Part shown: in pieces, positions 12,422-62,076 of the stretch
How positions within the stretch are numbered: position 1 is the stretch's first letter
How the letters are laid out: each line of letters opens with the position of its first letter
NCBI RefSeq assembly: GCF_963921235.1
Contig: NC_086123.1
Coordinates: forward strand, 30,938,001 to 31,002,000
Source of the DNA: Mobula hypostoma
Lineage: Eukaryota
Direction of reading: 5' to 3'
Length of the DNA stretch: 64,000 nucleotides
Translations under genes and position numbers: made by a program
The notes under the pieces: model-generated
What the model was told of the DNA's origin: nothing
The model's input: the letters and a program-made list of their open reading frames with translations, nothing else
The model's database searches: none

Positions 12422-13114
12422 TCAGCCTCCACGTAGCCGGAGCAGCAGAGAGATGGTGGTTAGTGGTCTGATGTTGTAGTCGGAGAGCAATCGCCCATCC
12501 TCCAACTGTTTGCCCTCGTAAACCAGGCGCTGCTGGTCGGGTCTGACCCCCTCCTGCCGATGGACCCGCTCTTTAAAATTCTGCACGGACTCAGAGGGCA
12601 TCACATCGTACGTCGAGGTTTTCCCCTTTTCATTCAGGAGAAATATCTGCATGGATTCCTCTTTGCTAACCAACATGATGGTGGTTTGTGGTCTGATGTT
12701 GTAGTCGGAGAGCAATCGCCCATCCTCCAACTGTCTGCCCTCGTAAACCAGGCGCTGCTGGTCGGGTCTGACCCCCTCCTGACGATGGACCCGCGCTTTA
12801 AACTTCTGCACGGACTCAGAAGGCATCACGTCGTACGTCGAGGTTTTCCCCTTGTCATTCCGGAGAAATATCTGCATGGATTCCTCTTTCGTGACCAGCA
12901 ACATGACGGTGGGGCTGGGGTTGAGGTTGTAGTAGCTCAGACTTCTCTGGTCTTGCATCTCCACGCTTTGGCCATTTTGCACCATCAGACGCTGTTGGAA
13001 AATGGGCACCTTGGTCTTTTCCTGGATTTTCATCTTGAGAGTCGACACTTGAATGGAAGGGTCGACATCAAGGTCGAAACCATCGCCGCTGATAAACCTC
13101 ACCTGAAGTCTCAT
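12422..13114 (-). CDS. ISG15: ISG15-like modifier A, three Ubl domains (230 aa), C-terminal LRLRGG
   Basis: Divergent N-terminal Ubl followed by two near-identical Ubl domains. The [11 protein letters not shown] motif resembles human ISG15 RNNKGRSSTYEV. Ends LRLRGG-stop, with no internal GG. Splice acceptor 12 nt upstream of the ATG; ISRE promoter upstream. Confidence 0.85.
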
Positions 13115-13126
13115 CTTGTCAAATCG

Positions 13127-14534
13127 CTGTGGAGAAAGGAGAAGTGATTAGAGAGTTTTTACATCAGCAGGGCATGAATATGAGGTATTAATATGGCATT
13201 GCCTATAATATCAACATAATTAGACTATTTACTAAGATCTGTAGACAAGCGGCAAAAGACAAACCACTCTTTCCCTCGCAGTTCTAAAGGAATTTTGAGC
13301 CGCAATACTGACAATTGACGGGAGAGGGACTCCGTGAGCCGGTGGGTTTAAACATTTTTGAACTTGATTCGATTAGCGGCAAAAAAATGTGTAAGTGTCT
13401 CATTGGGACCGTAGTAAATGTGCAACTTGTTTAGATTTCTAAGCCAGGACCATTCTAACCGCCGCTTAATAGGGGAAATAGGGGAATAGGTGACTTTTGT
13501 CACATCGCGTTAATGGTGCACCGGGGAGAGCATTCGGACTTGTTGCATCACCGTCTGATATGGAGGGGCCACGACACAGGGTCAGAAAAAGCTGCGGAGG
13601 GTGGTAAACTCATCCAGCTCCATCATGGGCACCAACAGAGAGTATCTTCAAAAGCTAATACCTCACGGAGAAGGCATCGATCATTCTGGGCCTGCAGGTC
13701 ATGCCCGCTTCTCATTGCTACCACCAGCGAGGAGCCTGCGGACTCACGCTCAACGTTTCATGAACAGATGAACTACTGAACAGTACTTTTGCTTCACACA
13801 CACGCGTAAATGTATACTGTATATACTGTATATGTGTGTGTGTGTATGCTATTATAATTTATATTTATGTTATGTACAGTACTGCCGCCGCAAATTGCCA
13901 AGTTTATCGATTTAAGTTAGTGGTGGTCGTCACAATTCTGATTCTAAATCGATTCTACTGCGAATGAACTCCATTTTACTTTCAACCAAACATTCGCGCC
14001 CCTGCTTTCCTGCAGAGAAAGTGTTCACTAACGACCCAGATTTCCCGAGTCACTCAATTCACGCGCAAATTATTGTCGTGACATGAACGAAGATTTCATG
14101 CACCGTTTTAACAAGACCGTCACTCTACATCAGCCGATTGACGGGTTTCACCGAACCGTGAGCCTATCAATCCGAGAAGCAGGAGTGGCCATTCGGCCTG
14201 CACCGCTATTCAATGATATCCCCGATGATCTTTTACCTCGCCGCTAGTTGCCAACATTTGTCGCATATCTATTGCCCCCTTTCTGTAAAGTTAGTTTTCT
14301 ACTAACTTGTTCTCGCCCCGCGTTTTGTCAGCGGTAGAGACTACATTTCCCACCCGGTTCACAGGATGCTAGTAATTTAAATTATATCGTCAATGTTGTA
14401 AACAGGTAGATAAAAATGAGAACTTTGAGATAATCAAATAAAGTCTTACAATTTTTGTCGACAGTACAGGAAGTCAGGACGAATCTGAAGAAAATCTGAT
14501 CCGCAGCTTTTTTTCTTTGCCCTTTATTCCGCAC
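13127..14534 (-). other. 5'UTR intron of gene A (equivalent acceptors at 21793, 31459, 41039, 50761, 60363)
   Basis: Minus strand reads ctaatcacttctcctttctccacAG|cgatttgacaagATG (branch point, polypyrimidine tract, AG). The candidate donor G|GTGCGG at 14534 is conserved in all units including the diverged left unit, but is less certain than the acceptor. Confidence 0.65.
13515..13780 (+). mobile_element. Old Rex1/Babar-derived fragment in the intron of each gene
   Basis: gagagcatt...tgcatcaccgtctgatatggag parallels the ESIL.GCITTWYG region of the element at 26105. Confidence 0.5.
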
Positions 14535-14637
14535 CGACTTTCAGCTCTGGTCCGGGTAAATCAATAGAAATTCTCCGGCTGCTGCTGATCGGTATCCCCG
14601 CACCTGCAACTCTGCGTCTCTCCGCCTCCCCCGGCTC

Positions 14638-14828
14638 GCTTTATCTCTGCCCCCGTTTCTGAACGTCACCGCGCCGCTGGGCTGATCTCACGGCCCGCTG
14701 TCACTGTGTTGACAAACAAACCAATCAGGTTCCAGCCGAAGTTTCGTTTCCGAAAAATTCCCCGCAGTAAATTGGAAACGTGTTCGCTCTGTTACAGGGT
14801 TCAACGCTATCGGCTGATTCACTTTCGG
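14638..14828 (-). promoter_or_regulatory. Interferon-responsive promoter of A
   Basis: ISRE AGTTTCGTTTCC at 14740-14751; abutting NF-kB-like GAAAAATTCCCC at 14752-14763; CCAATCA at 14721; IRF-E-like TTCACTTTCGG at 14818-14828; GATAAA TATA-variant at ~14640 (minus strand). Confidence 0.75.
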
Positions 14829-16548
14829 ATTCCGTTCTGGTGTCAGCATCTGCAACAATAACACAGGCACAGGGAAGTCGAGAATGTGAAACCCGATCTT
14901 GAAACGGAAAATAACCTTAAACGTGTCATCTCCGAATACATTTATCTGGTTCATTCAGTGACAACCTAAGTGATAAAATGCACGAATCCACCGAAACAAA
15001 ACAACACAACTGGGCCCAATCCACATCACCTCTATTTCCCCATCATTCTTGCCCAGATCCCCGTGGGCTGAGCAGCCGTAGTGTTACCCCGTTTCCCGAG
15101 CTTCACCCCATCCAGCATATCAATCTTTTCAACGTCCACCATCTCCACCGTGATTCCACAACCCGTCACACATTCTGCTCTGCACCTCTTTCTGCTCTCG
15201 GCATGGACCCCTCGGTGCGTGACTTACAGGTCCTCAGATCCCTCACCCCACCCCACCTCCCCCACCCCCACCAGCGGAACTTCATAGGATGTGTTGCAGC
15301 TGACCTCTCCAATGGTCAGCCCGCCTCCATCACCCACCAGGGCCCTAAAGGGAGACCCAGGAGATCATACAGACGCCAGGAATCTTGAAGAGCAGCCAAA
15401 ATAGTTGGGGGAACTCTGGAGGTCAGGCAGCATCATTGAAGGGAAATGAACATCCATAATTCACTCGAGATCCTTCATCAGGATTGGAAAGAAAGGGGGC
15501 TGAAGCCAGAATAAGGAGGAGGGATGAGAGAGAGGTGGAGTATAAATTAGTGAGGGGGAGAATGGATGGGTGTGGGAGTGGGGATGATGTGAGAAGACGG
15601 GAGGTGATCAGTGTAAGCACTAAGGGGCTGAAGAAGAAGGAATCTGATCGGAAGGGGCAGGAGACCATGGAAGGAGATGGGGAACCTGGGAGGGTCATGA
15701 GGGTGGGGGAGGAAAGAGGTGAGAGGGTCACCAAAGTAGGAAAAAAACCTAAAGGGGGAGTGTTGACCAGAGGTTAGAGGTTAATGCCGTCAGGTTAAAG
15801 ACTACTCAGGCCGAGAATGAGATATTGCTCCCCCAGATTGTGCTTGGCTTCATCGTGGCAGTGTCCTAAACTGCCCTTCCAGGTGAGGCGGACATTCACG
15901 TGCACCTCCCTTGGCTTTCTTTATTGTATCAAGGGCTTCTGATGTGGTGTCCTCTATTTTGGTGAGACCAGGTGGAAATTAGACTGGGAATCTCTTATCA
16001 GATTCCATCATCTGCAGCTCTTTATCACCTCCACCCATCACTTCCCAGCTTCTGTCCCCATGTTCACTCTCCCTCCTCCATCCGCCTATCATCCCTTCTC
16101 ACCTGGATCCATCTGGTGTTTAGGACAGCAATAAAGGAACTCCGTTCCCATCGGTACAAAAGGTTTCTTCATTGCTGTTTCTGTGACAATTGCTTATTGA
16201 CCAGTCACGGTTCTTATCCATGAGCTGAACACCTGAACCTGGAGGTGCGCTGGTCCACTGTTACTTTGCCCTCTAACCTTTATCTGTTTGACACAGGTGA
16301 CCCTACCAAGAGCCAAAGCAAAAGGCCTGACTCCAGCCAACGTAACTCTCTGGGTCATTGAGGCACACAAGTCTCCAAGCCCTATGACAAGGTTGTGGTC
16401 CTCTTGGAATAGATTTACCTGAGCAATCATTAACTACTTGAGAGGTCAGGTGGACATTGCTAATGATCAGAATAAGCATAATAAAAATGTGGAATCATAT
16501 AATTTGCAATAATGATTAAGTTAATATGCGGAATTATCTTCTGGCATG

Positions 16549-21066: not shown

Positions 21067-21780
21067 TTAACCATCAGCGGGAGTAAATCTGCCTCCACCT
21101 AGCCGGAGCAGCAGAGAGATGGTGGTTCGTGGTGTGATGTTGTAGGCGGAGAGCAATCGCCCATCCTCCAACTGTTTGCCCTCGTAAACCAGGCGCTGCT
21201 GTTCGGGTCTGACCCCCTCCCGCCGATGGACCCGCGCTTTAAACTTCTGCACGGACTCAGAGGGCATCACGTCGTACGTCGAGGTTTTCCCCTTGTCATT
21301 CAGGAGAAATATCTGCATGGATTCCTCTTTGCTAACCAACATGACGGTGGTTTGTGGTCTGATGTTGTAGTCGGAGAGCAATCGCCCATCCTCCAACTGT
21401 CTGCCCTCGTAAACCAGGCACTGCTGGTCGGGTCTGACCCCCTCCTGCCGATGGACCCGCGCTTTAAACTTCTGCATGGACTCAGAGGGCATCACATCGT
21501 ACGTCGAGGTTTTCCCTTTGTCATTCCGGAGAAATATCTGCATGGATTCCTCTTTCGTGACCAGCAACAGGACGGTGGGGCTGGGGTTGAGGTTGTAGTA
21601 GCTCAGACTTCTGTCGTCCTGCATCTCCACGCTTTGGCCATTTTGCACCATCAGACGCTGTTGGAAAATGGGCACCTTGGTCTTTTCCTGGATTTTCATC
21701 TTGAGTGTCGACACTTGAATGGAAGGGTCGACAGCAAGTTCGAAACCATCGCCGCTGATAAACCTCACCTGAAGTCTCAT
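21067..21780 (-). CDS. ISG15: ISG15-like modifier B, three Ubl domains (237 aa), altered C-terminus LRLGGG-RFTPADG
   Basis: Paralog of A with CGT>GGT (R>G) in the LRLRGG motif and TGA>AGA stop loss, giving a 7-aa extension. ORF, acceptor and promoter intact. Confidence 0.78.
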   Translation of the reverse strand: MRLQVRFISGDGFELAVDPSIQVSTLKMKIQEKTKVPIFQQRLMVQNGQSVEMQDDRSLSYYNLNPSPTVLLLVTKEESMQIFLRNDKGKTSTYDVMPSESMQKFKARVHRQEGVRPDQQCLVYEGRQLEDGRLLSDYNIRPQTTVMLVSKEESMQIFLLNDKGKTSTYDVMPSESVQKFKARVHRREGVRPEQQRLVYEGKQLEDGRLLSAYNITPRTTISLLLRLGGGRFTPADG

Positions 21781-23283
21781 CTTGTCAAATCGCTGTGGAG
21801 AAAGGAGAAGTGATTAGAGAGTTTTTACATCAGCAGGGCATGAACTATGAGGTATTAATATGGCATTGCCTATAATATCAACATAATTAGACTATTTACT
21901 AAGATCTGTAGACAAGCGGCAAAAGACAAACCACTCTTTCCCTCGCAGTTCTAAAGGAATTTTGAGCCGCAATACTGACAATTGACGGGAGAGGGACTCC
22001 GCGAGCCGGTGGGTTTAAACATTTTTGAACTTGATTCGATTAGCGGCAAAAAAAATATGTAAATGTTACTCATTGGAACCGCAGTAAATGTGCAACTTGT
22101 TTAGATTTCTAAGCCAGGACCATTCCAACCGCAGTTTAATAGGGGAAAAATCACTTCTGTCACATCGCGTTAATGGTGTACCGGGGAGAGCATTCGGACT
22201 TGTTGCATCACCGTCTGATATGTAGGGGCAACGACACAGGGTCAGAAAAAGCTGCAGAGGGTGGTAAACTCATCCAGCTCCATCATGGGCACCAACAGAG
22301 GATATCTTCAAAAGGTGATACCTCACGGAGAGGGCATCGATCATTCTGGGCCTGCAGGTCATGCCCGCTTCTCATTGCTACCACCAGCGAGGAGCTTGAA
22401 GACTCACGCTCAACGTTTCATGAACAGATGAACTACTGAACAGTACTTTTGCTTGTGTGTGTGTGTGTGTGTGTGTGCGCGCGCTATTATAATTTATATT
22501 ATGTTTTATGTACTGTATTGAACTGCCGCCGCAAATTGCCAAATTTATCGATTTAAGTTAGTGGTGATCACCCCAATTCTGATTCTAAATCGATTCTGCT
22601 GAGAATGAACTCCATTTTACTTTCAACCAAACATTCACCCTCCACGCCCGCTTTCCTGCACAGAAAGAGTCCACTCCTGACCCAGACTTCCCGAGTCACT
22701 CAATTCACACGCAAATTATTGTCGTGACATGAACGAAGATTTCATGCACCGTTTAACAAGACCGTTACGCTACATCAGCCGATTAACGGGTTTCACCGAA
22801 CCGTGAGCCTATCAATCTGAGAAGCAGGAGTGGCCATTCGGCCTGCACCGCTATTCAATGATATCCCCGATGATCTTTTACCTCGCCGCCAGTTGACAAC
22901 AATTTGTCGCGGATCTATTGCCACTTTCTGTAAAGTTAGTTTTCTACTAACTTGTTCTCGCCCCGCGTTTTGTCAGCGGTAGAGACTACATTTCCTGCCC
23001 GGTTCAGAGGATCTTAGTAATTTAAATTATACCGTCAATGTTGTAAACAGCTAGATAAAAATGAGAACTTTGAGATAATCAAATAAAGTCTTACAATTTT
23101 TGTCGACAGTGCAGGAAGTCAGGACGAATCTGAAGAAAATCTGATCCGCAGCTTTTTTTCTTTGCCCTTTATTCCGCACCGACTTTCAGCTCTGGTCCGG
23201 GTAAATCAATAGAAATTCTCGGGCTGCTGCTGATCGGTATCCCCGCTCCTGCAACTCTGCGTCTCTCCGCCTCCCCCGGCTCG

Positions 23284-23474
23284 CTTTATCTTCTGCTCCC
23301 GTTTCTGAACGTCACCGCGCCGCTGGGCTGATCTCACGGCCCGCTGTCGCTGTGTTGATAAACAAACCAATCAGGTTCCAGCCGAAGTTTCGTTTCCGAA
23401 AAATTCCCCGCAGGGAATTGGAAATGCATGCGCCCTGTTACAGGGTTCAACGCTATCGGCTGAGTCACTTTCGG
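23284..23474 (-). promoter_or_regulatory. Interferon-responsive promoter of B
   Basis: ISRE 23386-23397, kB-like 23398-23409, perfect AP-1 TGAGTCA 23461-23467 next to CTTTC. Confidence 0.75.
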
Positions 23475-24924
23475 ATTCCGTTCTGGTGTCAGCATCTGCA
23501 ACAATAACACAGGCACAGGGAAGTCGAGAATGTGAAGCCCGATCTTGAAACGGAAAATAACCTTAAACGTGTCATCTCCGAATACATTTATCTGGTTCAT
23601 TCAGTGACAACCTAAGTGATAAAATGCACGAATCCACCGAAACAAAACAACACAACTGTGCCCAATCCACATCACCTCTATTTCCCCATCATTCTTGCCC
23701 AGATCCCCGTGGGCTGAGCAGCCGTAGTGTTACCCCGTTTCCCGAGCTTCACCCCATCCAGCATATCAATCTTTTCAACGTCCACCATCTCCACCGTGAT
23801 TCCACAACCCGTCACACATTCTGCTCTGCACCTCTTTCTGTTTTCGGCATGGACCCCTCGGTCCGTGACTCACAGGTCCTCAGATCCCTCCACCCACCCC
23901 ACCTCCCCCACCCCCACCAGCGGAACTTTGTAAGTGTAGGATGTGTTACAGCTGACCTCTCCAATGGTCAGCCCGCCTCCATCACCAACCAGTGCCCTAA
24001 AGAGAGACCCAGGAGATCATACAGACGCCAGGAATCTTGAAGAGCAGCCAAAATAGTTGGGGGAACTCTGGAGGTCAGGCAGCATCAATGGAGGGAAATG
24101 AACATCCATAATTCACTCGAGATCCTTCATCAGGATTGGAAAGAAAGGGGGCTGAAGCCAGAATAAGGAGGAGGGATGAGAGAGAGGTGGAGTATAAATT
24201 AGTGAGGGGGAGAATGGATGGGTGTGGGAGTGGGGATGATGTGAGAAGATGGGAGGTGATCAGTGTAAGCACTAAGGGGCTGAAGAAGAAGGAATCTGAT
24301 CGGTAAGGACAGGAGACCATGGAAGGATATGGGGATCCTGGGAGGGTCATGAGGGTAGGGGAGGAAAGAGGTGAGAGGATCACTAAAATAGGAAAAAAAC
24401 TAAAGGGGAGGTGTTGACCAGAACTTAGAGTTTAATGCCATCGGGTTAAAGACTACTCAGACCGAGTATGAGATATTGCTCCCCCAGATTGTGTTTGGCT
24501 TCATCGTAGCAGTGTCCTAAACTGCACTTCCAGGTGAGGCAGACATTCACGTGCACCTCCCTTGGCTTTCTTTATTGTAGCAACTGCTTCTGATGTGGTG
24601 TCCTCTATATTGGTGAGACCAGGTGGAAATTAGACTGGGAATCTCTTATCAGATTCCATCATCTGCTGCTCTTTATCACCTCCACCCATCACTTCCCAGC
24701 TTCTGTCCCCATGTCCACTCTCCCTCCTCCATCCGCCTATCATTCATTCTCAACCGGATCCATCTTGTGTTTAGGACAGCAATAAAGGACCTCCATCTCT
24801 ATCTGGACACAAGGTTTCTTCATTGCTGTTTCTGTGACAATTATTTTTTGACCAGTCACTGTTCTTATCCATGAGCTGAACACCTGAACCTGGAGATGTG
24901 GTGGTCCACTGTTAGTCTGCCCTC

Positions 24925-25475
24925 TGTTAGAGTGAAGTTTTTTGGATAGATGATTTGTTTACACTTAAATGACTTTTGCCACCAGACTTCTATTTGACAA
25001 AGTACTGTGGATTGAGTCCACAACAATGCGCTTCCTAAAGGTGTGAATACCAGATGCTTCTGGTGCCGTAGTTTGACCAGATGCTGTAGTTTCAAAGACA
25101 GTATTATCTGTACTTTATAAATATTAATTGTCTTCTATGTTAGCACATAAAATGCCAAATAAATGTATGGTGGATTTAACTAAAGGCTGTGGATACCAAC
25201 CCAGACATGTTGGCGTCAGAAGGAAAGGATGAAATCCGAAGATGTGATGTTTGTATGTAGCTTCAAAAGGAAGCATTGTCTATAACTTTTTAGGTAGTGA
25301 TGGCCTTTGAGTTTAGCATATAAATATCTGAACCCACATTGGACTAACAGTCCTTTCTACTGGAAGCGTCTCCGTCCATATGATGCCTGCTTGTTGTGTC
25401 GAATGTCGAATAAAGAAGCTGGTTTGAATCTACCAGTGACTCTGACTCTCCATTAATGTCATCCACGCTACAACA
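24925..25475 (+). mobile_element. Solo LTR with 5-bp TSD CCCTC (BEL/Pao- or Copia-type)
   Basis: TGTT...AACA termini, internal AATAAA, absent from the homologous sites in units 0, A, C and E. Confidence 0.75.
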
Positions 25476-25977
25476 CCCTCTACCCTTTGACCTGTTTGGC
25501 ACACGTGACCCTACCAAGAGCCAAAGCAAAAGGCCCTGACTCCAGCCAACGTAACTCTCTGGGTCATTGAGGCACACAAGCCTCCAAGCCCTGCGACAAG
25601 GTTGTGGTGCTCTTGGAATAGATTTACCTGAGCAAACATTAACTATTTGAGAGGTCAGGTGGACATTGCTAATGCTCAGTGTAAGCATACTAAAAATTGT
25701 GGAATCATATAATTTGTTTAAGTTAATATGTAGAATTATCTTCTGGCATGTGTTAATACCTTAGTTATTATCTTTGGGACTCAGCACAAAATTGAAAAGA
25801 TGTTAAACCATCAATTTACACCTAATTCTTAAAATGCACAGACTCATTGATAGATTTGTTTCCTTTGCCTCTTCTTGATCCTGCAGGAGTCTGTTAAAGT
25901 TCTTAAAGTAAAATTCTAGGACAATTAAAGGACAATTTTGAAACCTTTATTCTGGGCTACAGCAATTAATTATTCAG

Positions 25978-49330: not shown

Positions 49331-50280
49331 GAGTGAGGTAAAAGTAACACAGTGGGGAATAGTGACAGTTAAACTTCAATATTTACTTTGGATTAAATAG
49401 GAAAGAATGCAGAATAGCTAACATAATGATTCCATTGTGTAAAGTGTTGAATGTGAATTGGGGTTTTTGAGAATCTTGTACATGGTTCAAACGCCACAAT
49501 CAAACTTTGGTCAAGATACTTCATCTCTTACCAGGGTCTACAGAATTAGATGAACGCAATCACACAGAAATGCCAGTGTTCCTGCATTTAGACTTTTATT
49601 AAAAAAATCATTTCAAATCATATTGGAAATTTCAACAATGAAAATTGCAAAGCATTTAGAACCTCAACTAATCTGATTTCATTAAATTTTAATGCTAAAA
49701 TGAAAATAAAGATCCATTGGAAGAACACAGGAACTGAAGCAAACAATTCTTGAGGTCGTTAAGGTCAAGCAGTAAGTCATCTCCCCATCCCCCATCAAAC
49801 CCAATCTTTTTAGTGGGATTTGTTTCAAAACATTGTAAATTGAAATTGCCACAGCAGTTATTTCTGGGTCTCTGAGTGAAACCCATTATATGTGGGAAAT
49901 CATAGACCATCAGATTATGATCAGCCATTCGGAGTTACATTGATCTGAAGAGGAGGTGCAGGTTGCCAGAGTTCCTTTGATATTGTTAATATCTGGCCTC
50001 TGCAAAATTGACAACCCATGTTTTCCAGGCTAAGAAGGCAACAAGGTGATAAGCGACAAACGTCGATGGGAATTTATGTCATTGTCCGACAGACACCCCA
50101 TCAGTACAGCATTAATACAGAGCGGAAATCGGTCCTTTGTCCAACTTGTGAATGTCAGTGTGGAACGTAGCAGATAGACAGGATAATGTAACAAAGTGCT
50201 CACGACAGAATATAGGAATGCAATAAAATACCAATAAATTATTTTTAATCACAGTTTTCTCAACCGTCTGCAGGAGTAAA

Positions 50281-50748
50281 TCAGCCTCCACGTAGCCGGA
50301 GCAGCAGAGAGATGGTGGTTAGTGGTCTGATGTTGTAGTCGGAGAGCAATCGCCCATCCTCCAACTGTTTGCCCTCGTAAACCAGGCGCTGCTGGTCGGG
50401 TCTGACCCCCTCCTGCCGATGGACCCGCTCTTTAAACTTCTGCACGGACTCAGAGGGCATCACGTCGTACGTCGTCGTTTTCCCCTTGTCGTTCAGGAGA
50501 AATATCTGCATGGATTCCTCTTTCCTGACCAGCAACATGACGGTGGGGCTGGGGTTGAGGTTGTAGTAGCTTAGACTTCTGTCGTCCTGCATCTCCACGC
50601 TTTGGCCATTTTGCACCATCAGACGCTGTTGGGAAATGGGCACGTTGGTCTTTTCCTGGATTTTCATCTTGAGTGTCGACACTTGAATGGAAGGGTCGAC
50701 ATCAAGTTCGAAACCATCGCCGGTGATAAACCTCACCTGAAGTCTCAT
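50281..50748 (-). CDS. ISG15: ISG15-like modifier E, two Ubl domains (155 aa), LRLRGG
   Basis: Higher-order-repeat copy of C (offset 19302 bp); 2 aa differences. Confidence 0.85.
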
Positions 50749-51411
50749 CTTGTCAAATCGCTGTAGAGAAAGGAGAAGTGATTAGAGAGTTTTTACACCA
50801 GATGTGCATGAACTATGATGTATTAATATGGCATTGCCTATAATATCAACATAATTAGACTATTTACTAAGATCTGTAGACAAACGGGAAAAGACAGACC
50901 CCTCTTTCCCAGCAGTTCTGAATGTGTGACAGGAATTTTGAGCCGCAATACTGACAATTGACGGGAGAGGGACTCCGTGAGCCGGTGGGTTTAAACATTT
51001 TTGAACCTGATTCGATCAGCAGCAAAAAAATGTGTAAATGTCTCATTGGGACCGTAGTAAGTGTGCAACTTGTTTAGATTTCTAAGCCAGGACCATTCCA
51101 ACCGCCGCTTAATAGGGGAAAAAAAATCACTTTTGTCACATCGCGTTAATGGTGTACCGGGGAGAGCATTCGGACTTGTTGCATCACCGTCTGATATGGA
51201 GGGACCACGACACAGGGTCAGAAAAAGCTGCGGACAGTGGTAAACTCATCCAGCTCCATCATGGGCACCAACAGAGTGTATCTTCAAAAGGTGATGTCTC
51301 ACGGAGAAGGCATCGATCATTCTCGGCCTGCAGGTCATGCCCGCTTCTCATTGCTACCACCAGCGAGGAGCCTGAAGTCTCACGCTCAACGTTTTAGGAA
51401 CAGATGAACTA

Positions 51412-51540
51412 NNNNNNNNNNNNNNNNNNNNNNNNNNNNNNNNNNNNNNNNNNNNNNNNNNNNNNNNNNNNNNNNNNNNNNNNNNNNNNNNNNNNNNNNN
51501 NNNNNNNNNNNNNNNNNNNNNNNNNNNNNNNNNNNNNNNN
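51412..51540. other. Assembly gap (129 N)
   Basis: Run of N at the position of the intronic CA/TG palindrome. Confidence 1.
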
Positions 51541-52321
51541 ATGTTATGTACTGCATTGTACTGCCGCCCCAAATTGCCAAATTTAACGATTTAAATTAGT
51601 GGTGATCACCCGAATTCTGATTCTAAATCGATTCTGCTGAGAATGAACTCTATTTACTTTCAACCAAACATTCACCCTCCACCCCCGCTTTCCTGCACAG
51701 AAAGTGTTCACTCCCGACCCAGACTTCCCGAGTCACTCAATTCACACGCAAATTATTGTCGTGACATGAACGAAGATTTCATGCACCGTTTTAACAAGAC
51801 CGTCACTCTACATCAGCCGATTAACGGGTTTCACCGAACCGTGAGCCGATCAATCTGAGAAGCAGGAGTGGCCATTCGGCCTGCACCGCTATTCAATGAT
51901 ATCCCCGATGATTCTTTACCTCGCCGCTAGTTGACAACAATTTGTCTCGTATCTATTGCCCCTTTCTGTAAAGTTAGTTTTCTACTAACTTGTTCTCGCC
52001 CCGCGTTTTGTCAGCGGTAGAGACTACATTTCCTGCCCGGTTCAGAGGATCTTAGTAATTTAAATTATATTGTCAATGTTGTAAATAGCTAGATAAAAAT
52101 GAGAACTTTGAGATAATCAAATAAAGTCTTACAATTTTTGTCGACAGTACCGGAAGTCAGGACGAATCTGAAGAAAATCTGATCCGCAGCTTTTTTTCTT
52201 TGCCCTTTATTCCGCACCGACTTTCAGCTCTGGTCCGGGTAAATCAATAGAAATTCTCCGGCTGCTGCTGATCGGTATCCCCGCTCCTGCAACTCTGCGT
52301 CTCTCCGCCTCCCCCGGCTCG

Positions 52322-52512
52322 CTTTATCTTCTGCTCCCGTTTCTGAACGTCACCGCACCGCTGGGCTGATCTCACGGCCCGCTGTCGCTGTGTTGACAAA
52401 CAAACCAATCAGGTTCCAGCCGAAGTTTCGTTTCCGAAAAATTCCCCGCAGTAAATTGGAAACGTTTTCGCTCTGTTACAGGGTTCAACGCTATCGGCTG
52501 ATTCACTTTCGG
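52322..52512 (-). promoter_or_regulatory. Interferon-responsive promoter of E
   Basis: ISRE 52424-52435, kB-like 52436-52447. Confidence 0.75.
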
Positions 52513-52823
52513 ATTCCGTTCTGGTGTCAGCATCTGCAACAATAACACAGGCACAGGGACGCCGAGAATGTGAAGCCCGATCTTGACCGGAAAATAACCT
52601 GAAACGTGTCATCTCTGAATACATTTATCTAGTTCATTCAGTGACAACGTAAATGATGAAATGCACGAATCCACCCAAACAATACAACACAACTGTGCCC
52701 AATCCACATCACCTCTATTTCCCCATCTTGCTTGCCCATCTCCCCGTGGGCAGTCAGTCGTAGTGTTACCCCGTTTCCCGAGCTTCACCCCATCCAGCAT
52801 ATCAATCTTTTCAACGTCCGCCA

Positions 52824-55800
52824 TAGAACATAGAACACAGAATAGTACAGCACAGTACAGGCCCTTCGGCCCACAATGTTGTGCCGACCCTGAAACTCTG
52901 CCTCCCATATAAGCCCCCACCTTAAATTCCTCCATATACCTGTCTAGTAGTCTGTTAAACTTCACTGGTGTATCTGGCTCCACCACTGACTCAGGCAGTG
53001 AGTTCCACGCACCAACCACTCTCTGAGTAAAAAACCTTCCTCTAATATCCCCCTTGAACTTCCCACCCATTACCTTAAAGGAATGTCCCCTTGTATTGAG
53101 CAGTGGTGACCTGGGGAAGAGGCGATGGCTATCCACTCTATCTATTCCTCTTATTATCTTGTACACCTCTATCATGTCTCCTCTCATCCTCCTTCTCTCC
53201 AAAGAGTAAAACCCTAAATCTCTGATCATAGTGCATACTCTCTAAACCAGGCAGCACCCTGGTAAATCTCCTCTGTACCATTTCCAATGCTTCCACATCC
53301 TTCCTATAGTGAGGTGACCAGAACTAGACACAGTACTCCAAGTGTGGCCTAACCAGAGTTTTATAGAGCTGCATCATTACATCGTGACTCTTAAACTCTA
53401 TCCCTCGACTTATGAAAGCTAACACCCCATAAGCTTTCTTAACTACCCTATCCACCTGTGAGGCAACTTTCAGGGATCTGTGGACATGTACCCCCGATCC
53501 CTCTGCTCCTCCACACTAACAAGTATCCTGCCATTTACTTTGTACTCTGCCTTGGAGTTTGTCCTTCCAAAGTGTACCACCTCACACTTCTCTGGGTTGA
53601 ATTCCATCTACCACTTCTCAGCCCACTTCTGCATCATATCAATGTCTCTCTGTAATCTTTGACAATCCTCTACACTATCTACAACACCACCAACCTTTGT
53701 GTCGTCTGCAAACTTGCCAACCCACCCTTCTACCCCCCCACATCCAGGTCGTTAATACCAGTAGTCACAATCCTCCTATCTGAATGTACTCCCTCCACCA
53801 CGACCCTCTGCCTTCTGCAGGCAGGCCAATTCTGAATCCACCTGGCCAAACTTCCCTGGATCCCATGCCTTCTGACTTTCTGAATAAGCTTACCATGTGG
53901 AACCTTGTCAAATGCCTTACTAAAATCCATACCGATCACATCCACTGCAATACCCTCATCTATATGCCTGGTCACCTCCTCAAAGAACTCTATCAGGCTT
54001 GTTAGACATGATCTGCCCTGCACAAAGCCATGCTGACTGTCCCTGATCAGACCATGATTCTCTAAATGCCCAGAGATCCTACCTCTAAGAATCTTTTCCA
54101 ACAGCTTCCCACCACAGATGTAAGGCTCACTGGTCTATAATTACCCGGACTATCCCTACTACCTTTTTTGAACAAGGGGACAACATTCGCCTCCCTCCAG
54201 TCCTCCGGTACCATTCCCGTGGACAACGAGGACATAAAGATCCTAGCCAGAGGCTCAGCAATCTCTTCCCTCGCCTTGTGGAGCAGCCTGGGGAATATTC
54301 CGTCATGCCCTGGGGTCTTATCCGTCCTAATGTATTTTAACAACTCCAACACCTCCTCTCCCTTAATATCAGCATGCTCCAGAACGTCACCCTCACTCAT
54401 ATTGTCCTCACCGTCATCAAGTTCCCTCTCATTGGTGAATACCGAAGAGAAGTATTCATTGAGGACCTGACGCACTTCCATGGCCTCCAGGCACATCTTC
54501 CCACCTTTATCTCTAATTGGTCCTACCTTCACTCCTGTCATCCTTTTTTTCTTCACATAATTGAAGAATGCCTTGGGGTTTTCCTTTACTCCACTCGCCA
54601 AGGCCTTCTCATGCCCCCTTCTTGCTCTTCTCAGCCCCTTCTTAAGCTCCTTTCTTGCTTCCCTATATTCCTCAATAGACCCATCTGATCCTTGCTTCCT
54701 AAACCTCATGTATGCTGCCTTCTTCCACCTGACTAGATTTTCCACCTCACTTGTCACCCATGGTTCCTTCACCCTACCATTCTTTATCTTCATCACTGGG
54801 ACAAATTTATCCCTAACATCCTGCAAGAGATCTCTAAACATCGACCACATCCCCATAGTACATTTCCCTGCAAAAACATCATCCCAATTCACACTCGCAA
54901 GTTCTAGTCTTATAGCCTCATAATTTGCCCTTCCCCAATTAAAAATTTTCCTGTCCTCTCTGATTCTATCCTTTTCCATGATAATGCTAAAGGCCAGGGA
55001 ACACTGGTCACTGTCCCCCAGATGCTCACCCATTGAGAGATCTGTGACCTGACCCGGTTCATTACCTAGTACTAGATCTAGTATGGCATTCCCCCTAGTC
55101 GGCCTGTCCACATACTGTGACAGGAATCCGTCCTGGACACACTTAACAAACTCTGCCCCATCTAAACCCTTGGAACTAATCAGGTGCCAATCAATATTAG
55201 GAAGTTAAAGTCACCTATGATAACAACACTGTTATTTTTGCATCTTTCCAAAATCTGCCTCCCAATCTGCTCCTCTGTATCTCTGCTGCTACCGAGGGCC
55301 TATAGAATACTCCCAATAGAGTAACTGCTCCCTTCCTGTTCCTGACTTCCACCCATACTGACTCAAAAGAGGATCCTGCTACATTACCCACCCTTTCTGT
55401 AGCTGTAATAGTACCCTTGACCAGTAATGCCACCCCTCCTCCCCTTTTTCTGCCCTCTCTATCCCTTTTAAAGCACTGAAATCGGGGAATATTGAGAATC
55501 CATTCCTGCCCTGGTGCCAGCCAAGTCTCTGTAATGGCCACTACATCATAATTCCATGTATGTATCCAAGCTCTCAGTTCATCACCTTTGTTCCTGATGC
55601 TTCTTGCATTGAGGTACATACACTTCAGCCCTTCTACCTTACGACCTTTACACCCTTTATTCTGCTTCTCTTTCCACAAAGCTTTCTATATTTTAGATCT
55701 GGCTTTACTCCATGCACTTCTTTCACTGCTCTATCGCTCTGGGTCCCATCCCCCTCGCAAATTAGTTTAAACCCTCCCGAACCATGCTAACAAACCTACC

Positions 55801-55865
55801 TGCAAGGATATTGCTCCCCCTCGAGTTCAGGTGCAACCCATCCAATCAGTACAGGTTCATCTGTA
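52824..55865 (-). mobile_element. Duplicated CR1 LINE
   Basis: Near-identical to 33497-36540. Confidence 0.9.
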
Positions 55866-58800
55866 CCATCTCCACCGTGATTCCACCACCTATCACACAT
55901 TCTGCTCTGCACCTCTTTCTGCTTTCAGCATGGACCCCTCGGTCTGTGACTCACTGGTCCTCAGATCCCTCACCCCACCCCGCCTCCCCCACCCTCACCA
56001 GCGGAACTTTGTAAGTGTAGGATGTGTTACAGCTGACCTCACCAATGGTCAGCCCGCCTCCATCACCAACCAGGGCCCTAAAGAGAAACCCAGGGGATCC
56101 TACAGATGCCAGGAATCTTGAAGAGCACGCCAACATAGTTGGGGGAACTCTGGAGGTCAGGCAGCATCAATGGAGGGAAATGAACATCCGTAATTCACTC
56201 GAGATCCTTTATCAGGATTGGAAAGAAAAGAGGCTGAAGCCAGAATAAGGAGGAGGGATGAGAGAGAGGTGGAGTATAAATTAGTGAGGGGGAGAATGGA
56301 TGGGTGTGGGAGTGGGGATGATGTGAGAAGATGGGAGGTGATCGGTGTAAGCACTAAGGGGCTGAAGAAGAAGGAATCTGATCAGTAAGGACAGGAAACC
56401 ATGGAAGGAGATGGGGAACCTGGTGGGGTCATGAGGGTAGGGGAGGAAAGAGATCAGAGAATCACCAAAATAGGAAAAAAACTAAAGACGGAGTGTTGAC
56501 CAGAAGTTAGAGGTTAATGCCGTTAGGTTAAAGACTACTCAGATGGATTATGAGATATTGCTCCCCCAGATTGTATTTGGCTTCATCGTGGCAGTGTCCT
56601 AAACTGCCCTTCCAGGTGAGGCAGACATTCATGTGCACCTCCCTTAGCTTTCTTTATTGTATCAACTGCTTCTGATGTGGTGTCCTCTATATTGGTGAGA
56701 CCAGGTGGAAATTAGACTGGGAATCTCTTATCAGATTCCATCATCTGCAGCTCTTTATCACTTCCACCCATCACTTCCCAGCTTCTGTCCCCATGTTCAC
56801 TCTCCCTCCTCCATCCACCTATCATCCCTTTTCACCAGGATTCATCTTGCATTTAGGACAGCAATAAAATACCTCCATCTCCATCTGTACAAAAGGTTTC
56901 CTCATTGCTGTTTCTATGACAATTGTTTATTGACCAGTCACGGCTCTTATCCATGAGCTGAACACCTGAACCTGGAGGTGCAGTGGTCCACTGTTACTCT
57001 GCTCTCTAACCTTTGACCTGTTTGGCACAGGTGACCCTACCAAGAGCCAAAGCAAAAGGCCCTGACTCCAGCCAACGTAACTCTCTGGGTCATTGAAGCA
57101 CACAAGCCTCCAAGCCCTATTTCAAGTTTGTGGTCCTCTTGGAATAGATTTACCCGAGCAACGATTAACCATTTGAGAGGTCAGGTGGACATTGCTAACG
57201 CTCAGTGTAAGCATACTAACAATTGTGGAATCATATAATTTGATTAAGTTAATATAGAAACATAGAAAATAGGTGCAGGAGTAGGCCATTCAGCCCTTCG
57301 AGCCTGCACCGCCATTCAGTATGATCATGGCTGATCATCCAACTCAGAACCCTGTACCTGCCATCTCTCCATACCCCCTGATCCCTTTAGCCACAAGGGC
57401 CATATCTAACTCCCTCTTAAATATAGCCAATGAACTGGCCTCAACTGTTTCCTGTGGCAGAGAATTCCACAGATTCGCCACTCTCTGTGTGAAGAAGTTT
57501 TTCCTCATCTCGGTCCTAAAAGGCTTCCCCTCTATCCTCAAACTGTGGCCCCTCGTTCTGGACTTCCCCAACATCGGGAACAATTAATAAGTTAATATGT
57601 AGAATTATCTTCTGGCAGGTGTTATTGCCTTAATGATTATCTTTGGGACTCAGCACAAAATTGAAAAAATGTTAAACCATCAATTTACACCTAATTCTTA
57701 AAATGCACAGACTCATTGATAGATTTGTTTCCTTCACCTCTTCTTGATCCTGCAGGAGTCTATTAAAGTTCTTAAAGGAAAAAAATATGGGACAATTTTG
57801 AAATCTTTATTTATGGCTACAGCAATTGATTATTCAGGTTTTAAATGACGAAAGGATCAATTCCACCTCGCTACATCAGCAAAATTGGAGGTGAGTTTAA
57901 ATTCAGAACCTTAATACCATCCGCCCCAATCAAAGGTGGTTCCATTTCAATTAAGATCAATATCTTAAGACAATAATAAGACAATAACCTATCCCTCAAC
58001 GTCAGCAAGACGAAGGAATTGGTTGTTGACTTCAGAAGGAGTAGTGGACCGCACAACCGAATTTACATCGGTGGTGCGCAAGTGGAACAGGTCAAAAGCT
58101 TTAAGTTCCTTGAGGTCAATATTACAAATGACCTGACTTGGTCCAACCAAGCAGAGTTCACTGCCAAGAAGGCCTACCAGTGCCTTTACTTCCTGAGAAA
58201 ACTAAAGAAATTTGGCCTGTCCCTTAAAACCCTCACTAATTTTTATAGATGCACCGTAGAAAGCATTCTTCTAGGGTGCATCACAACCTGGTATGGAAGT
58301 TCTCCTGTCAAAGACTGAAAGAAGCTGCGGAAGATCGTGAACATGGCGCAGCACGTCACACAAGCCAATCTTCCGTCCGTGGACTCATTGTACACCGCAT
58401 GCTGTCGGAGGAGTGCTGCCAGGATAATCAAGGACACGACCCACCCAGCCAACAAACTTTTTGTCCCTCTTCCCTCCGGGAGAAGGCTCAGGAGCTTGAA
58501 GACTCGTATGGCCAGATTTGGGAACAGCTTCTTTCCTACTGTGATAAGATTGCTGAACAGATCCTGAGACAGATCTGGGCCATACCCTCCAAATATCCGG
58601 ACCTGCCTCTCGGTTTTTTTGCACTACCTTACTTCCCATTTTTCTATTTTGTATTTATGAATTATAATTTAAAATTTTAATATTTACTAATTTTAACTAT
58701 TTTTGATATTTAATATTTGTAATCCAGGGAGTGTAAAGTGTAGATTCAAATATTGCAGTGATAATTGTACATTCTAGTACTAGTTGTTTGGTGACAATAA

Positions 58801-59882
58801 AGTGTAAAGTATATCCTAGGCAAGGGGCTGGCAAACATGCAAATGTGTGCAGAAGAGGGAATTCATACTGGAACTTTCGAAAACTGTTATCACAATTCCA
58901 TGCATAATGATGTAGGAAAGGGAGAAGTGAGGTAAGAGTAACACAGTGGGGAATAGTAACAGTTAAACTTCAATATTTGCTTCGGATAAAATAGGAAAGA
59001 TGCAGAATAGCTAATATAATAATTCCATTGTGTAAAGTGTTAAATGTGAATTGGGGTTTTTGAGAATCTTGTACATGGTTCAAACGCCACAATCAAACTT
59101 TGGTCAAGATACTTCATCTATTACCAAGGTCTACAGAAATAGATTAAAGCAATCACACAGAAATGCCAGTGTTCATGCATTTAGACTTTTATTTTAAAAA
59201 ATCATTTCAAATCATATTGGAAATTTCAACAATGAAAATTGCAAAGCATTTAGAACCTCAACTAATCTGATTTCATTAAATTTTAATGCTAAAATGAAAA
59301 TAAAGATCCATTGGAAGAACACAGGAACTGAAGCAAACAATTCTTGAGGTCGTTAAGGTCAAGCAGTAAGTCATCTCCCCCTCCCCCATCAAACCCAATC
59401 TTTTTAGTGGGATTTGTTTTAAAACATTGTAAATTGAAATTGCCACAACAGTTATTTCGGGTCTCTGAGTGAGACCCATTATATGTGGGAAGTCATGGAC
59501 CATCAGATTGTGATCAGCCATTCGGAGTTACATTGATCTGAAGAGGAGGTGCAGGTTGCCAGAGTTCCTTGGATATTGTTAATATCTGGCCTCTGCAAAA
59601 CTGACAACCCATGTTTTCCAGGCTAAGAAGGCAACAAGGTGATAAGCGACAAACGTCGATGGGAATTTATGTCATTGTCCGACAGACACCCCATCAGTAC
59701 AGCATTAATACAGAGCGGAAATCGGTCCTTTGTCCAACTTGTGAATGTCAGTGTGGAACGTAGCAGATACACAGGATCAAGGATACACAGTAACAAAGTG
59801 CTCACGACAGAATATAGGAATGCAATAAAATACCAATAAATTATTTTTAATCACAGTTTTCTCAACCGTCTGCAGGAGTAAA

Positions 59883-60350
59883 TCAGCCTCCACGTCGCCG
59901 GAGCAGCAGAGAGATGGTGGTTAGTGGTCTGATGTTGTAGTCGGAGAGCAATCGGCCGTCCTCCAACTGTTTGCCCTCGTAAACCAGGCGCTGCTGGTCG
60001 GGTATGACCCCCTCCCGCCGATGGACCCGCTCTTTAAACTTCTGCACGGACTCAGAGGGCATCACGTCGTACGTCGAGGTTTTCCCTTTGTCATTCAGGA
60101 GAAATATCTGCATGGATTCCTCTTTCCTGACCAGCAACATGACGGTGGGGCTGGGGTTGAGGTTGTAGTAGCTTAGACTTCTCTGGTCCTGCATCTCCAC
60201 GCTTTGGCCATTTTGCATCATCAGACGCTGTTGGGAAATGGGCACGTTGGTCTTTTCCTGGATTTTCATCTTGAGTGTCGACACTTGAATGGAAGGGTCG
60301 ACATCAAGTTCGAAACCATCGCCGGTGATAAACCTCACCTGAAGTCTCAT
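59883..60350 (-). CDS. ISG15: ISG15-like modifier F, two Ubl domains (155 aa), variant C-terminus LRRRGG
   Basis: Higher-order-repeat copy of D (offset 19324 bp); CTA>CGA changes LRLRGG to LRRRGG. Confidence 0.82.
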
Positions 60351-61884
60351 CTTGTCAAATCGCTGTAGAGAAAGGAGAAATGATTAAAGAGTCTTTACAC
60401 CAGATGTGCATGAACTATGATGTATTAATATGGCATTGCCTATAATATCAACACAATTAGATTACTTACTAAGATCTGTAGACAAGCGGGAAAAGACAGA
60501 CCCCTCTTTCCCAGCAGTTCAGAATGTGTGACAGGAATTTTGAGCCGCAATACTGACAATTGACGGGAGAGGGACTCCGCGAGCCGGTGGGTTTAAACAT
60601 TTTTGAACTTGATTCGATCAGCGGCAAAAAAATATGTAAATGTTACTCATTGGGACCGTAGTAAATGTGCAACTTGTTTAGATTTCTAAGCCAGGACTGT
60701 TCCAACCGCCGCTTAATAGGGGAAAAAAATCACTTTTGTCACATCGCATTAATGGTGTACCGGGGAGAGCATTCGGACTTGTTGCATCACCGTCTGATAT
60801 GGAGGGACCACGACACAGGGTCAGAAAAAGCTGCGGACAGTGGTAAACTCATCCAGCTCCATCATGGGCACCAACAGAGTGTATCTTCAAAAGGTGATGT
60901 CTCACGGAGAAGGCATCGATCATTCTCGGCCTGCAGGTCATGCCCGCTTCTCATTGCTACCACCAGCGAGGAGCCTGAAGTCTCACGCTCAACGTTTTAG
61001 GAACAGATGAACTAATGAACAGTATTTTTGTCTGACACACACACACACTCGTATATATACTGTGTGTGTGTGTGTGTGTGTATGCTATTATTATTTATAT
61101 TATATGTTATGTACTGCATTGTACTGCCGCCCCAAATTGCCAAATTTATCGATTTAAATTAGTGGTGATCACCCGAGTTCTGATTCTAAATCGATTCTGC
61201 TGCGAATAAACTCCATTTTACTTTCAACCAAACATTCACCCTCCACCCCCGCTTTCCTGCACAGAAAGTGTTCATTCCCGACCCAGACTTCCCGAGTCAC
61301 TGAACTCACACGCAAATTATTGTCGTAATATGAACGAAGATTTCATGCACCGTTTTAACAAGACCGTCACTCTACATCAGCCGATTAACGGGTTTCACCG
61401 AACCGTGAGCCTATCAATCCGAGTAGCAGGAGTGGCCATTCGGCCTGCACCGCTATTCAATGATATCCCCGATGATCTTTTACCTCGCCGCCAGTTGACA
61501 ACAATTTGTCGCGGATCTATTGCCACTTTCTGTAAAGTTAGTTTTCTACTAACTTGTTCTCGCCCCGCGTTTTGTCAGCGGTAGAGACTACATTTCCTGC
61601 CCGGTTCAGAGGATCTTAGTAATTTAAATTATATTGTCAATGTTGTAAACAGCTAGATAAAAATGAGAACTTTAAGATAATTAAATAAAGTCTTAAAATT
61701 TTTGTCGACAGTACCGGAAGTCAGGACGAATCTGAAGAAAATCTGATCCGCAGCTTTTTTTCTTTGCCCTTTATTCCGCACCGACTTCCAGCTCCGGTCC
61801 GGGTAAATCAATAGAAATTCTCCGGCTGCTGCTGATCGGTATCCCCGCTCCTGCAACTCTGCGTCTCTCCGCCTCCCCCGGCTC

Positions 61885-62076
61885 GCTTTGTCTTCTGCCC
61901 CCGTTTCTGAACGTCACCGCGCCGCTGGGCTGATCTCACGGCCCGCTGTCGCTGTGTTGACAAACACACCAATCAGGTTCCAGCCGAAGTTTCGTTTCCG
62001 AAAAATTCCCCGCAGTAAATTGGAAACGTTTTCGCCCTGTTACAGGGTTCAACGCTATCGGCTGATTCACTTTCGG
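61885..62076 (-). promoter_or_regulatory. Interferon-responsive promoter of F (TATA-variant mutated)
   Basis: ISRE 61988-61999, kB-like 62000-62011; GATAAA>GACAAA at 61890. Confidence 0.7.

Follow-up and report, generated by a model that had tools for sequence, protein, structure and literature searches.

A 64,000-nt stretch of the genome of the lesser devil ray, Mobula hypostoma (NCBI RefSeq assembly GCF_963921235.1, contig NC_086123.1, positions 30,938,001 to 31,002,000 of the forward strand; hereafter the window, numbered from its first nucleotide), was analysed for an array of genes resembling ISG15, a central antiviral modifier that is usually taught as a single-copy gene with two ubiquitin-like (Ubl) domains. 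The list of open reading frames (ORFs) and their translations contained six intact ORFs, all on the minus strand and spaced ~9.6 kb apart, which are named g1 to g6 here (Table 1); tblastn with the array proteins returned no other copy or fragment inside the window. Three ubiquitin-family domains (PF00240) were recognised by Pfam in g1 and g2, and two in g3 to g6. The motif LRLRGG stands directly before the stop codon in g1, g3, g4 and g5, and is absent from g2, which reads LRLGGG and then a 7-aa tail, and from g6, in which a single CTA-to-CGA change at 59895-59897 produces LRRRGG. At least six intact tandem paralogs, in four forms and in a probable cartilaginous fish, had been claimed in the original prediction, and all of this was confirmed: the forms are three-Ubl with LRLRGG (g1), three-Ubl with LRLGGG plus tail (g2), two-Ubl with LRLRGG (g3 to g5) and two-Ubl with LRRRGG (g6).

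Table 1. Features of the ISG15-like array and its surroundings, in window coordinates
Feature	Position	Strand	Basis or remark
g1 coding exon	12422..13114	-	230 aa, 3 Ubl (N, C'-type middle, C), ends LRLRGG-stop; ORF and translation
g1 middle domain	12653-12877	-	within 3-Ubl ORF
g1 5'UTR intron, 1341 nt	13127..14467	-	GT donor; AG acceptor 12 nt before ATG; splice joint 13127/14469
g1 exon 1, non-coding, ~126 nt	14468..14594	-	RNA contigs; 5' end approximate
g1 core promoter	14639..14763	-	TATA-like GATAAAG 14639-14645; ISRE-like GGAAACGAAACT 14740-14751; kB-like GGGGAATTTTTC 14752-14763
Canonical ISRE core GAAACGGAAA, inverted	14901..14910 (g1), 23547-23556 (g2)	+	motif scan
g2 coding exon	21067..21780	-	237 aa, 3 Ubl, LRLGGG then RFTPADG, stop lost; direct reading
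g2 middle domain	21319-21543	-	within 3-Ubl ORF
g2 exon 1/intron boundary	23112..23113	-	splice donor GC, not GT; alignment and direct reading
g2 ISRE-like + kB-like composite	23386..23409	-	alignment of upstream regions
g3 coding exon	30979..31446	-	2-Ubl, 155 aa, LRLRGG; ORF, Pfam
g3 exon 1	~32824-32950	-	by alignment
g3 ISRE-like + kB-like composite	33097..33120	-	alignment of upstream regions
g4 coding exon	40559..41026	-	2-Ubl, 155 aa, LRLRGG; type found in RNA contigs
g4 exon 1	~42404-42530	-	by alignment
g4 ISRE-like + kB-like composite	42677..42700	-	alignment of upstream regions
g5 coding exon	50281..50748	-	2-Ubl, 155 aa, LRLRGG; separate 155-aa gene call on chromosome record
g5 exon 1	~52151-52277	-	by alignment
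g5 ISRE-like + kB-like composite	52424..52447	-	alignment of upstream regions
g6 coding exon	59883..60350	-	2-Ubl, 155 aa, LRRRGG (L152R); ORF, direct reading
g6 exon 1	~61715-61841	-	by alignment
g6 ISRE-like + kB-like composite	61988..62011	-	alignment; TATA-like box GACAAAG in g6
Higher-order tandem repeat, ~19.3 kb, 2 genes per period	22460..64000		at least 2.15 periods in window, exits right edge; self-BLAST
LINE reverse-transcriptase fragments in repeat unit	27147..29964, copy 46436-49253		ORFs, Pfam RVT_1
Second LINE, with endonuclease	33282-36354, copy 52609-55679		Pfam RVT_1, Exo_endo_phos
Assembly gap, 129 N	51412..51540		in g5 5'UTR intron, at sister-unit microsatellite position
LTR retroelement, left bound of array in window	6442..11146	-	self-BLAST, Pfam

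Each gene consists of two exons, separated by a 1.3 kb intron that lies in the 5' untranslated region (5'UTR), and has its entire coding region in exon 2. A splice joint skipping 1341 nt was present in RNA contigs of all four runs examined (four samples of the same species). One RNA contig stops at 14594 and then runs into adapter, and another reaches 14882, 290 nt above the inferred start. The splice donor is GT in g1 and in g3 to g6, and GC in g2. RNA contigs that were placed on g1 skip 225 nt and therefore derive from a two-Ubl copy; at informative sites their letters agreed with g4/g6 at 29 of 29, with g3/g5 at 26, with g2 at 13 and with g1 at none. The LRLRGG codons carried no change among the RNA variants listed, nine further variants not being included there. 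Basal expression in the four runs was therefore of a g4/g6-type two-Ubl form. No RNA contig from these samples covered the g1 middle domain, and none fell on g2 at ≥97% identity. A search of public runs for words of the g1 middle domain found no run that holds them, a weak negative given that 18 words were used and that even the DNA runs of the assembled sample itself hold no more than 0.22 of these words. Separately, the 365-aa RefSeq model P0130 was found to be g4 read through into g3 (window 33100-33200 and matching places above each gene): its linker translates the g3 distal promoter (MLTPERNPKVNQPIALNP), and a GT donor upstream of the ISRE-like element described below is spliced to the normal acceptor. 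From the structure of this model, transcription of one gene appears to continue into its neighbour.

An invariant composite element, GGGGAATTTTTC-GGAAACGAAACT, lies ~1.63 kb upstream of the ATG in 6/6 copies and combines a kB-like part with a part resembling the interferon-stimulated response element (ISRE); on the plus strand, AGTTTCGTTTCC starts at 14740, 23386, 33097, 42677, 52424 and 61988. The composite came to light only when the six upstream regions were aligned; they have a mean identity of 98% and place it ~150 nt above the inferred start, with the TATA-like GATAAAG following. A strict ISRE scan of the window (GAAANNGAAAST) returned a single site, at 2122, and none upstream of the array copies; a scan for the ISRE core GAAANNGAAA returned hits upstream of g1 and g2 only, both inverted, and in the alignment a 1-nt deletion destroys this inverted core in g3 to g6. 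Between copies, exon 1 is 98-100% identical, the promoter 96-98% and the intron 92-96%. As six duplicates are not independent evidence, a second lineage, the whale shark, was used as the test, and identity found there is more than chance would give: the 18-mer GGAAACGAAACTTCGGCT is identical in the whale shark (at -1775 from the ATG, vs -1637 in Mobula), which also keeps a TGACGTTC-GAAAC block and a TATA-like box, and which has a canonical double ISRE where Mobula has a degenerate GAAAGTGAAT. The kB-like part matches 8/10 consensus positions and is not conserved in the whale shark. Each paralog had been predicted to carry its own ISRE/kB promoter; the ISRE-like/IRF element stood up in all six copies and in the whale shark, and the kB site, being weak and unconserved, did not. 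Taken together, these alignments make an IRF/ISRE-type promoter well supported. Two further sites stand left of the array and away from any ISG15 copy: GAAAAAGAAACT, a canonical ISRE (minus strand, 2122-2133), and GGGAGACTCC, a kB-type palindrome (1550).

Self-BLAST resolved the locus into 9.6 kb units, 92-96% identical, nested inside a two-gene period of 19.3 kb, in which 22460-32107 pairs with 41750-51409 at 98.5% and 32217-44690 with 51541-64000 at 99.2%, with ~100-145 differences per 19.3 kb period. Two long interspersed nuclear elements (LINEs) were duplicated together with the 19.3 kb unit, so that the latest step would have copied a block already carrying transposons. The array had been expected to continue past both edges of the window. 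On the right this is supported by the gene calls of the chromosome, in which g5 is called alone, g4 and g3 are merged in the 365-aa model, and a 561-aa model ends at g6; the length of the last fits three units, and at least two further copies therefore probably lie beyond the right edge, for an array of at least six and probably eight or more copies. On the left no continuation is seen: tblastn within the window found no ISG15-like copy in 1-11600, a region occupied instead by a long terminal repeat (LTR) retroelement (LTRs at 6442-7129 and 10459-11146, 97.2% identical; gag with a SCAN-like domain and zinc knuckle). Two other features of the repeat were noted. The AT-rich spacer between g1 and g2 (18700-20700, 31% GC) is not matched by any other unit but is repeated in high copy across the genome, its DNA contig word depths running from hundreds to thousands; and an ORF of 143-154 aa (MHRRKHSS...) recurs once per unit on the plus strand (26389-26853, 38924-39355, 45678-46142 and 58249-58680), has no Pfam match and is probably transposon-derived.

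The assembly gap of 129 N lies within this array, and part of the copy number might accordingly be an assembly artefact, with haplotypes or misjoined contigs tandemised at the gap, or units collapsed, and a true array that is shorter or longer. The 98.5-99.2% identity of the two 19.3 kb periods is compatible with this, as is the fact that the DNA runs, which come from the assembled sample itself, are kept only as contigs, so that depth is crude. The flanks of the gap are collinear and in phase with 32107 and 32217, and whole extra 19.3 kb units could for that reason be hidden in it. Its counterpart in the sister unit is a (CA)n/(GT)n microsatellite (32108-32216, 109 nt), and exact repeat phase at a microsatellite is what read drop-out, not a misplaced haplotig, would be expected to produce; read drop-out is what the gap looks like. 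Moreover, the gap does not separate g3 from g5, whose spacing is 19.3 kb, which puts at least that duplication within one contig; the ~100-145 differences per period, the word depth of the shared-promoter DNA contig (~3-5x that of g2-specific contigs, crude support for several real copies) and the similar arrays that two further rays, Mobula birostris and Hemitrygon akajei, show in their own, independent assemblies also speak for real copies. DNA contigs at ≥97% left the g2 coding region almost uncovered and were usable only for this crude promoter depth ratio. An artefactual copy number is on these grounds considered improbable. That the gap breaks a gene was rejected: it occupies intronic sequence of g5, 664-792 nt above the ATG, and touches no coding frame and no promoter.

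The relationship of the encoded proteins was assessed from domain phylogeny, fold and layout. Identity to g3 is 93-94% in Mobula birostris and Hemitrygon akajei, 62-71% in sharks and skates, 59% in the elephant shark, 56% in the coelacanth and 42-49% in NCBI-named teleost ISG15. In a maximum-likelihood tree of single domains, the N domains of the window, of 17 other chondrichthyan sequences, of the coelacanth, of Amia and of teleost ISG15 form one clade (100/100), the C and middle domains form another (98/80), in which NCBI-named teleost ISG15, the coelacanth and Amia are likewise represented, and ubiquitin lies apart from both. The AlphaFold model of g3 (predicted local distance difference test score, pLDDT, 87.5) was compared with whole proteins in the PDB and gave template-modelling (TM) scores of 0.70-0.81 with human, mouse and canine ISG15 (root-mean-square deviation, rmsd, 2.6-3.9 Å), 0.61 with the chicken OASL Ubl tandem (rmsd 4.8-4.9 Å) and 0.45-0.54 with linear di-ubiquitin (rmsd 7.7-13.6 Å); such a model may lean on structures seen in training. 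In layout, g3 to g6 match ISG15 (free-standing, two tandem Ubl domains, 155 aa), and g1 and g2 depart from it with three. The predicted ISG15-like character is thereby borne out by the domain tree, the whole-protein fold and the C-terminal motif, the domains falling in ISG15 clades and not with ubiquitin in a tree of chondrichthyan, coelacanth, Amia, teleost and ubiquitin sequences, and the ray genes are read as co-orthologues of fish ISG15.

Three other identities were tried and rejected. Ubiquitin or polyubiquitin genes are contradicted by the tree and the fold, the domains being 43-46% identical to ubiquitin and the N and middle domains having no GG end. For FAT10/UBD, no chain appeared among the 60 best PDB sequence matches, where ISG15, the OASL Ubl and ubiquitin do appear; this exclusion does not come from the tree. 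An OASL Ubl tandem fused to an OAS domain does not fit ORFs that begin at the first Ubl behind a non-coding upstream exon, with no OAS domain in Pfam. Wider searches were dominated by ubiquitin: with the N domain as query, 1.84 billion representatives yielded an overwhelming number of multi-domain poly-Ubl proteins and no tetrapod ISG15, a profile search with fish ISG15 was dominated by polyubiquitin and supplied no tetrapod ISG15, OASL Ubl or UBD for the tree, and the top 30 Foldseek matches among Swiss-Prot models were polyubiquitins only. No OASL Ubl exon was found by tblastn in the comparison loci, and exact look-ups of the P0047, P0239 and g6 proteins gave no match.

We therefore read the locus, with good though not complete confidence, as a genuine tandem array of ISG15 genes in Mobula hypostoma, built from two-exon units with a conserved promoter, in which amplification is the main event and the variant copies are by-products of birth and death. 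Each ~9.6 kb unit is a self-contained two-exon gene, in which the promoter (TATA-like box, IRF/ISRE-type tandem GAAAC element and degenerate distal ISRE) drives a short non-coding exon 1, and the 1.3 kb intron is spliced to an acceptor that precedes the ATG by 12 nt. The protein is encoded entirely in exon 2 and, ending directly at LRLRGG-stop, has no pro-peptide to remove. The array was probably built by unequal crossing-over or segmental duplication, most recently by copying of the 19.3 kb two-gene block with its LINE insertions already in place. The main effect would be a high dosage of ordinary, conjugatable two-Ubl ISG15 under interferon/IRF control, with transcription apparently reading through between neighbouring genes. 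An older in-frame duplication of ~75 codons would have joined beta-5 of the C domain to the end and hinge of the N domain, giving the non-cleavable N-C'-C arrangement of g1 and g2. The variants would then be products of turnover: g1 intact with no expression seen, g2 degenerating, and g6 a very young L-to-R change at P4.

Several observations weigh against this reading. The copy number depends on a single assembly, in which a gap interrupts the array. The ISRE-like part is one spacer base short of the canonical GAAANNGAAACT (it equals the teleost and human ISG15 ISRE minus that base), and interferon induction is predicted solely from the promoter. RNA and DNA evidence is in the form of assembled contigs, which drop rare variants, so the absence of three-Ubl transcripts is weak. 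The tree contains no tetrapod ISG15, OASL Ubl or UBD. By sequence score, di-ubiquitin (E 4e-44) is ahead of mammalian ISG15 (E 4e-26) and of the chicken OASL Ubl (E 4e-24). Finally, the elephant shark (Callorhinchus milii, L002 1-20468) has a single homologue that adjoins not the genes flanking human ISG15 but OASL (divergent, head to head) on one side and a P2X receptor gene on the other; this is the neighbourhood of human OASL, and both it and the GatC neighbour of teleost ISG15 recall human 12q24 and not the locus of human ISG15. With an OASL-type neighbourhood, one-to-one orthology with mammalian ISG15 is not established.

The last two points would also suit an OASL-linked di-Ubl lineage, related to the OASL Ubl or derived from ubiquitin, that resembles ISG15 without being orthologous to its tetrapod form; the chicken OASL Ubl nearly equals ISG15 in sequence score (88.5 vs 94.9 bits), and ubiquitin outscores both. 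The same ubiquitin-like scoring is known for zebrafish and human ISG15, each of which is more like ubiquitin than like the other (PMC5381560), and the score by itself is therefore not decisive. The tree places both domains, with strong support, beside those of teleost and coelacanth ISG15, the whole-protein fold is nearer to ISG15 than to the OASL Ubl, and the product is a free-standing 155-aa protein ending in LRLRGG. Furthermore, teleost ISG15 adjoins GatC, an Mpv17/PMP22 gene and UDG, and GatC being a neighbour of the 12q24 type, the fish and ray genes probably share one locus. A separate OASL-linked lineage is thus held to be very unlikely. The elephant shark neighbourhood hints at a common ancestral locus of ISG15 and the OASL Ubl tandem. 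The intergenic region between OASL and the ISG15-like gene of the elephant shark (5692-5795) also holds a double canonical ISRE and a kB site.

The three-domain form and the tail variants remain to be placed within the preferred reading of an amplified ISG15. The middle domain of g1 and g2 is C-type over its first 67 residues and resembles the end of the N domain and the hinge in its last eight, MLVSKEES, so that it has no GG tail and is not cleavable; the junction fits an unequal exchange between two beta-5 strands. All three beta-grasp domains are complete in the AlphaFold model of g1 (mean pLDDT 91.0). In the tree, the middle domains cluster together (100/99) as the sister group of the a-type C domains, on a branch of 0.17, and synonymous divergence (dS) of the middle domain from the C domains is ~0.2, vs 0.03-0.09 among copies; either the duplication predates the recent expansion or the C domains have since been homogenised. 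Ratios of non-synonymous to synonymous divergence (dN/dS), which are Nei-Gojobori estimates on few changes, were 0.44-0.57 for g1 vs g3 to g6, 0.3-0.5 among g3 to g6 (the g4/g6 pair having no synonymous change) and 1.3-1.6 for g2 vs every other copy, and coding divergence between copies is lower than intron divergence. Relative to g4, g6 has two non-synonymous differences only, one of which is L152R at tail position P4, a residue read by LXGG-specific proteases and many deISGylases; a single young change of this kind cannot be called adaptive. The GC donor, lost stop, LRLGGG end and dN/dS of 1.3-1.6 indicate that g2 is probably decaying. In g1 and g3 to g6, an in-frame FTPADG-stop lies hidden after the LRLRGG stop (12401-12424 in g1), and g2 reads FTPADG as its tail (21067-21090). 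Short real tails follow the GG in skate, whale shark, horn shark and coelacanth homologues (LFALD, SL, FL, SSSY), and the hidden peptide may be a silenced ancestral pro-peptide.

The original prediction had gone further and described a diversifying antiviral repertoire, which can be read as one in which selection would keep differing domain numbers and tails for E1, USP18 and viral deISGylases. Four protein forms do exist; g1 has an intact ORF, splice sites, a promoter with an extra canonical ISRE and a predicted fold of three good Ubl domains; and the middle domain is older than the recent copies, so that the three-Ubl form has persisted. Beyond the window, a three-Ubl ISG15 arose independently in the sablefish and M. 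birostris has a tail variant of its own, LRLCGG, and the g6 change falls at the P4 residue read by many deISGylases. The word diversifying is nevertheless not supported, given dN/dS of 0.3-0.6 among g1 and g3 to g6 (below 1 in all pairs save those with g2) and a coding divergence below that of the introns. Each tail variant is a single substitution in one copy, g2 has several disabling changes, and g6 has a weakened TATA-like box besides its two substitutions. The RNA contigs of the four samples are of the g4/g6-type two-Ubl form, with neither three-Ubl copy among them, and no public run held the middle-domain words in the 18-word search. A functionally diversified repertoire is for these reasons regarded as unlikely, and the birth-and-death part of the prediction is retained, as it fits very recent 19.3 kb duplications and one decaying copy. 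In its strongest version, which we also rate as unlikely, the g1 three-Ubl protein would be a functional interferon-inducible modifier older than the expansion, tails of the LRRRGG type would be conjugatable and resist USP18 or viral deISGylases, the array would be a repertoire with differing writer and eraser specificities, and elasmobranchs might also encode poly-ISG15 precursors.

The amplification of this known antiviral modifier is, then, real and for the most part ordinary, and it includes two unusual architectural variants of putative function. The young higher-order repeat contains a minimum of six promoter-complete copies, probably eight or more, offering a natural system in which to ask whether ISG15 dosage or variety is selected, how an ISRE-driven promoter stays uniform across an array, and how conjugation and viral-protease cleavage are affected by a third Ubl or an altered LXGG site. 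Should the variants be merely neutral by-products, the case would be one of ordinary lineage-specific gene amplification. The OASL neighbourhood in the chimaera bears, in addition, on the origin of the OASL Ubl tandem.

Judged by RefSeq models, sharks, skates and rays commonly have several copies of ISG15-like genes, which are hidden there under the name 'polyubiquitin-like': many linked genes named 'polyubiquitin-like' or 'uncharacterized' occur in white shark, basking shark, catsharks, thorny skate, red stingray and Atlantic stingray, and neighbouring ISG15-like genes are 7-10 kb apart in Mobula birostris and Hemitrygon akajei. Myliobatiform rays also have a second, older ISG15 lineage, here called the b type (77-81% identical to g3; M. 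birostris P0005 and Hemitrygon P0006/P0007), of which the M. birostris copy P0005 ends in LRLCGG and no copy lies in the window. Some elasmobranch models (P0137, P0191, P0201, P0490, of 310 aa, and P0239, of 461 aa) join two or three ISG15 units head to tail; those of 310 and 461 aa have a direct LRLRGG|MRLQ junction like that of a polyubiquitin precursor, and some are listed as isoforms of 155-aa genes. The 5'UTR splice of the ray would add RFDK before the Met and therefore cannot make this junction. No description of elasmobranch ISG15 arrays or of a three-domain ISG15 was found in the literature.

Among known systems, fish ISG15 is described in a 2026 review as mostly single copy and not extensively duplicated, with salmon as the exception (PMC13030082). 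Atlantic salmon has clusters of linked ISG15 genes on chr20 (two copies) and chr24 (four), with one induced per cluster (PMC12234341; PMC13030082). Like the ray, it has closely linked multiple copies, only some of which are virus-responsive, matching birth and death; unlike those of the ray, its copies derive partly from whole-genome duplication, and the papers make no mention of a 19.3 kb higher-order repeat, of three-Ubl forms or of tail variants (PMC12234341; PMC13030082). Mammalian ISG15 (1Z2M, 7S6P, 5CHV) shares with the ray proteins the same two-domain packing over ~152 aligned residues, the LRLRGG tail and the C-domain signature N-x-K-G-x-x-S/T-T-Y-D/E-V, and differs in being 35-39% identical and in being made with a C-terminal extension where most ray copies end at GG. 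Human ISG15 is single copy and lies in a different chromosomal neighbourhood. Polyubiquitin (UBB/UBC) has the highest raw sequence scores, and RefSeq names ray and shark genes after it, but it forms separate clades, the ray N domain has the ISG15-type 3-residue insertion, the ray domains are not mutually cleavable, and their interdomain packing is unlike that of linear di-ubiquitin. The C-terminal Ubl tandem of OASL (chicken, 7SBI) is similar in length (~155 aa), identity (34-35%) and fold (TM 0.61), but is fused to an OAS domain and is a weaker fold match than ISG15. Sablefish (Anoplopoma fimbria) P0412, a 237-aa protein named 'polyubiquitin-like', is a three-Ubl ISG15 whose middle domain is likewise a duplicated C-type domain, non-cleavable and without a GG tail; this middle domain is sister to the sablefish's own C domain within teleosts, making the form independent of that of the ray. 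Teleost ISG15 (Chaetodon, Clinocottus, Salarias) has two Ubl domains in 154-158 aa, an LRLRGG end, a single coding exon behind a 5'UTR intron and an upstream ISRE (GGAAACCGAAACT at -282 in the butterflyfish Chaetodon), as in the ray; it is 42-49% identical, whereas the ray has a long array, two three-domain copies and an ISRE-like element one spacer base shorter, and the N and C domains of the two are each other's closest relatives in the tree.

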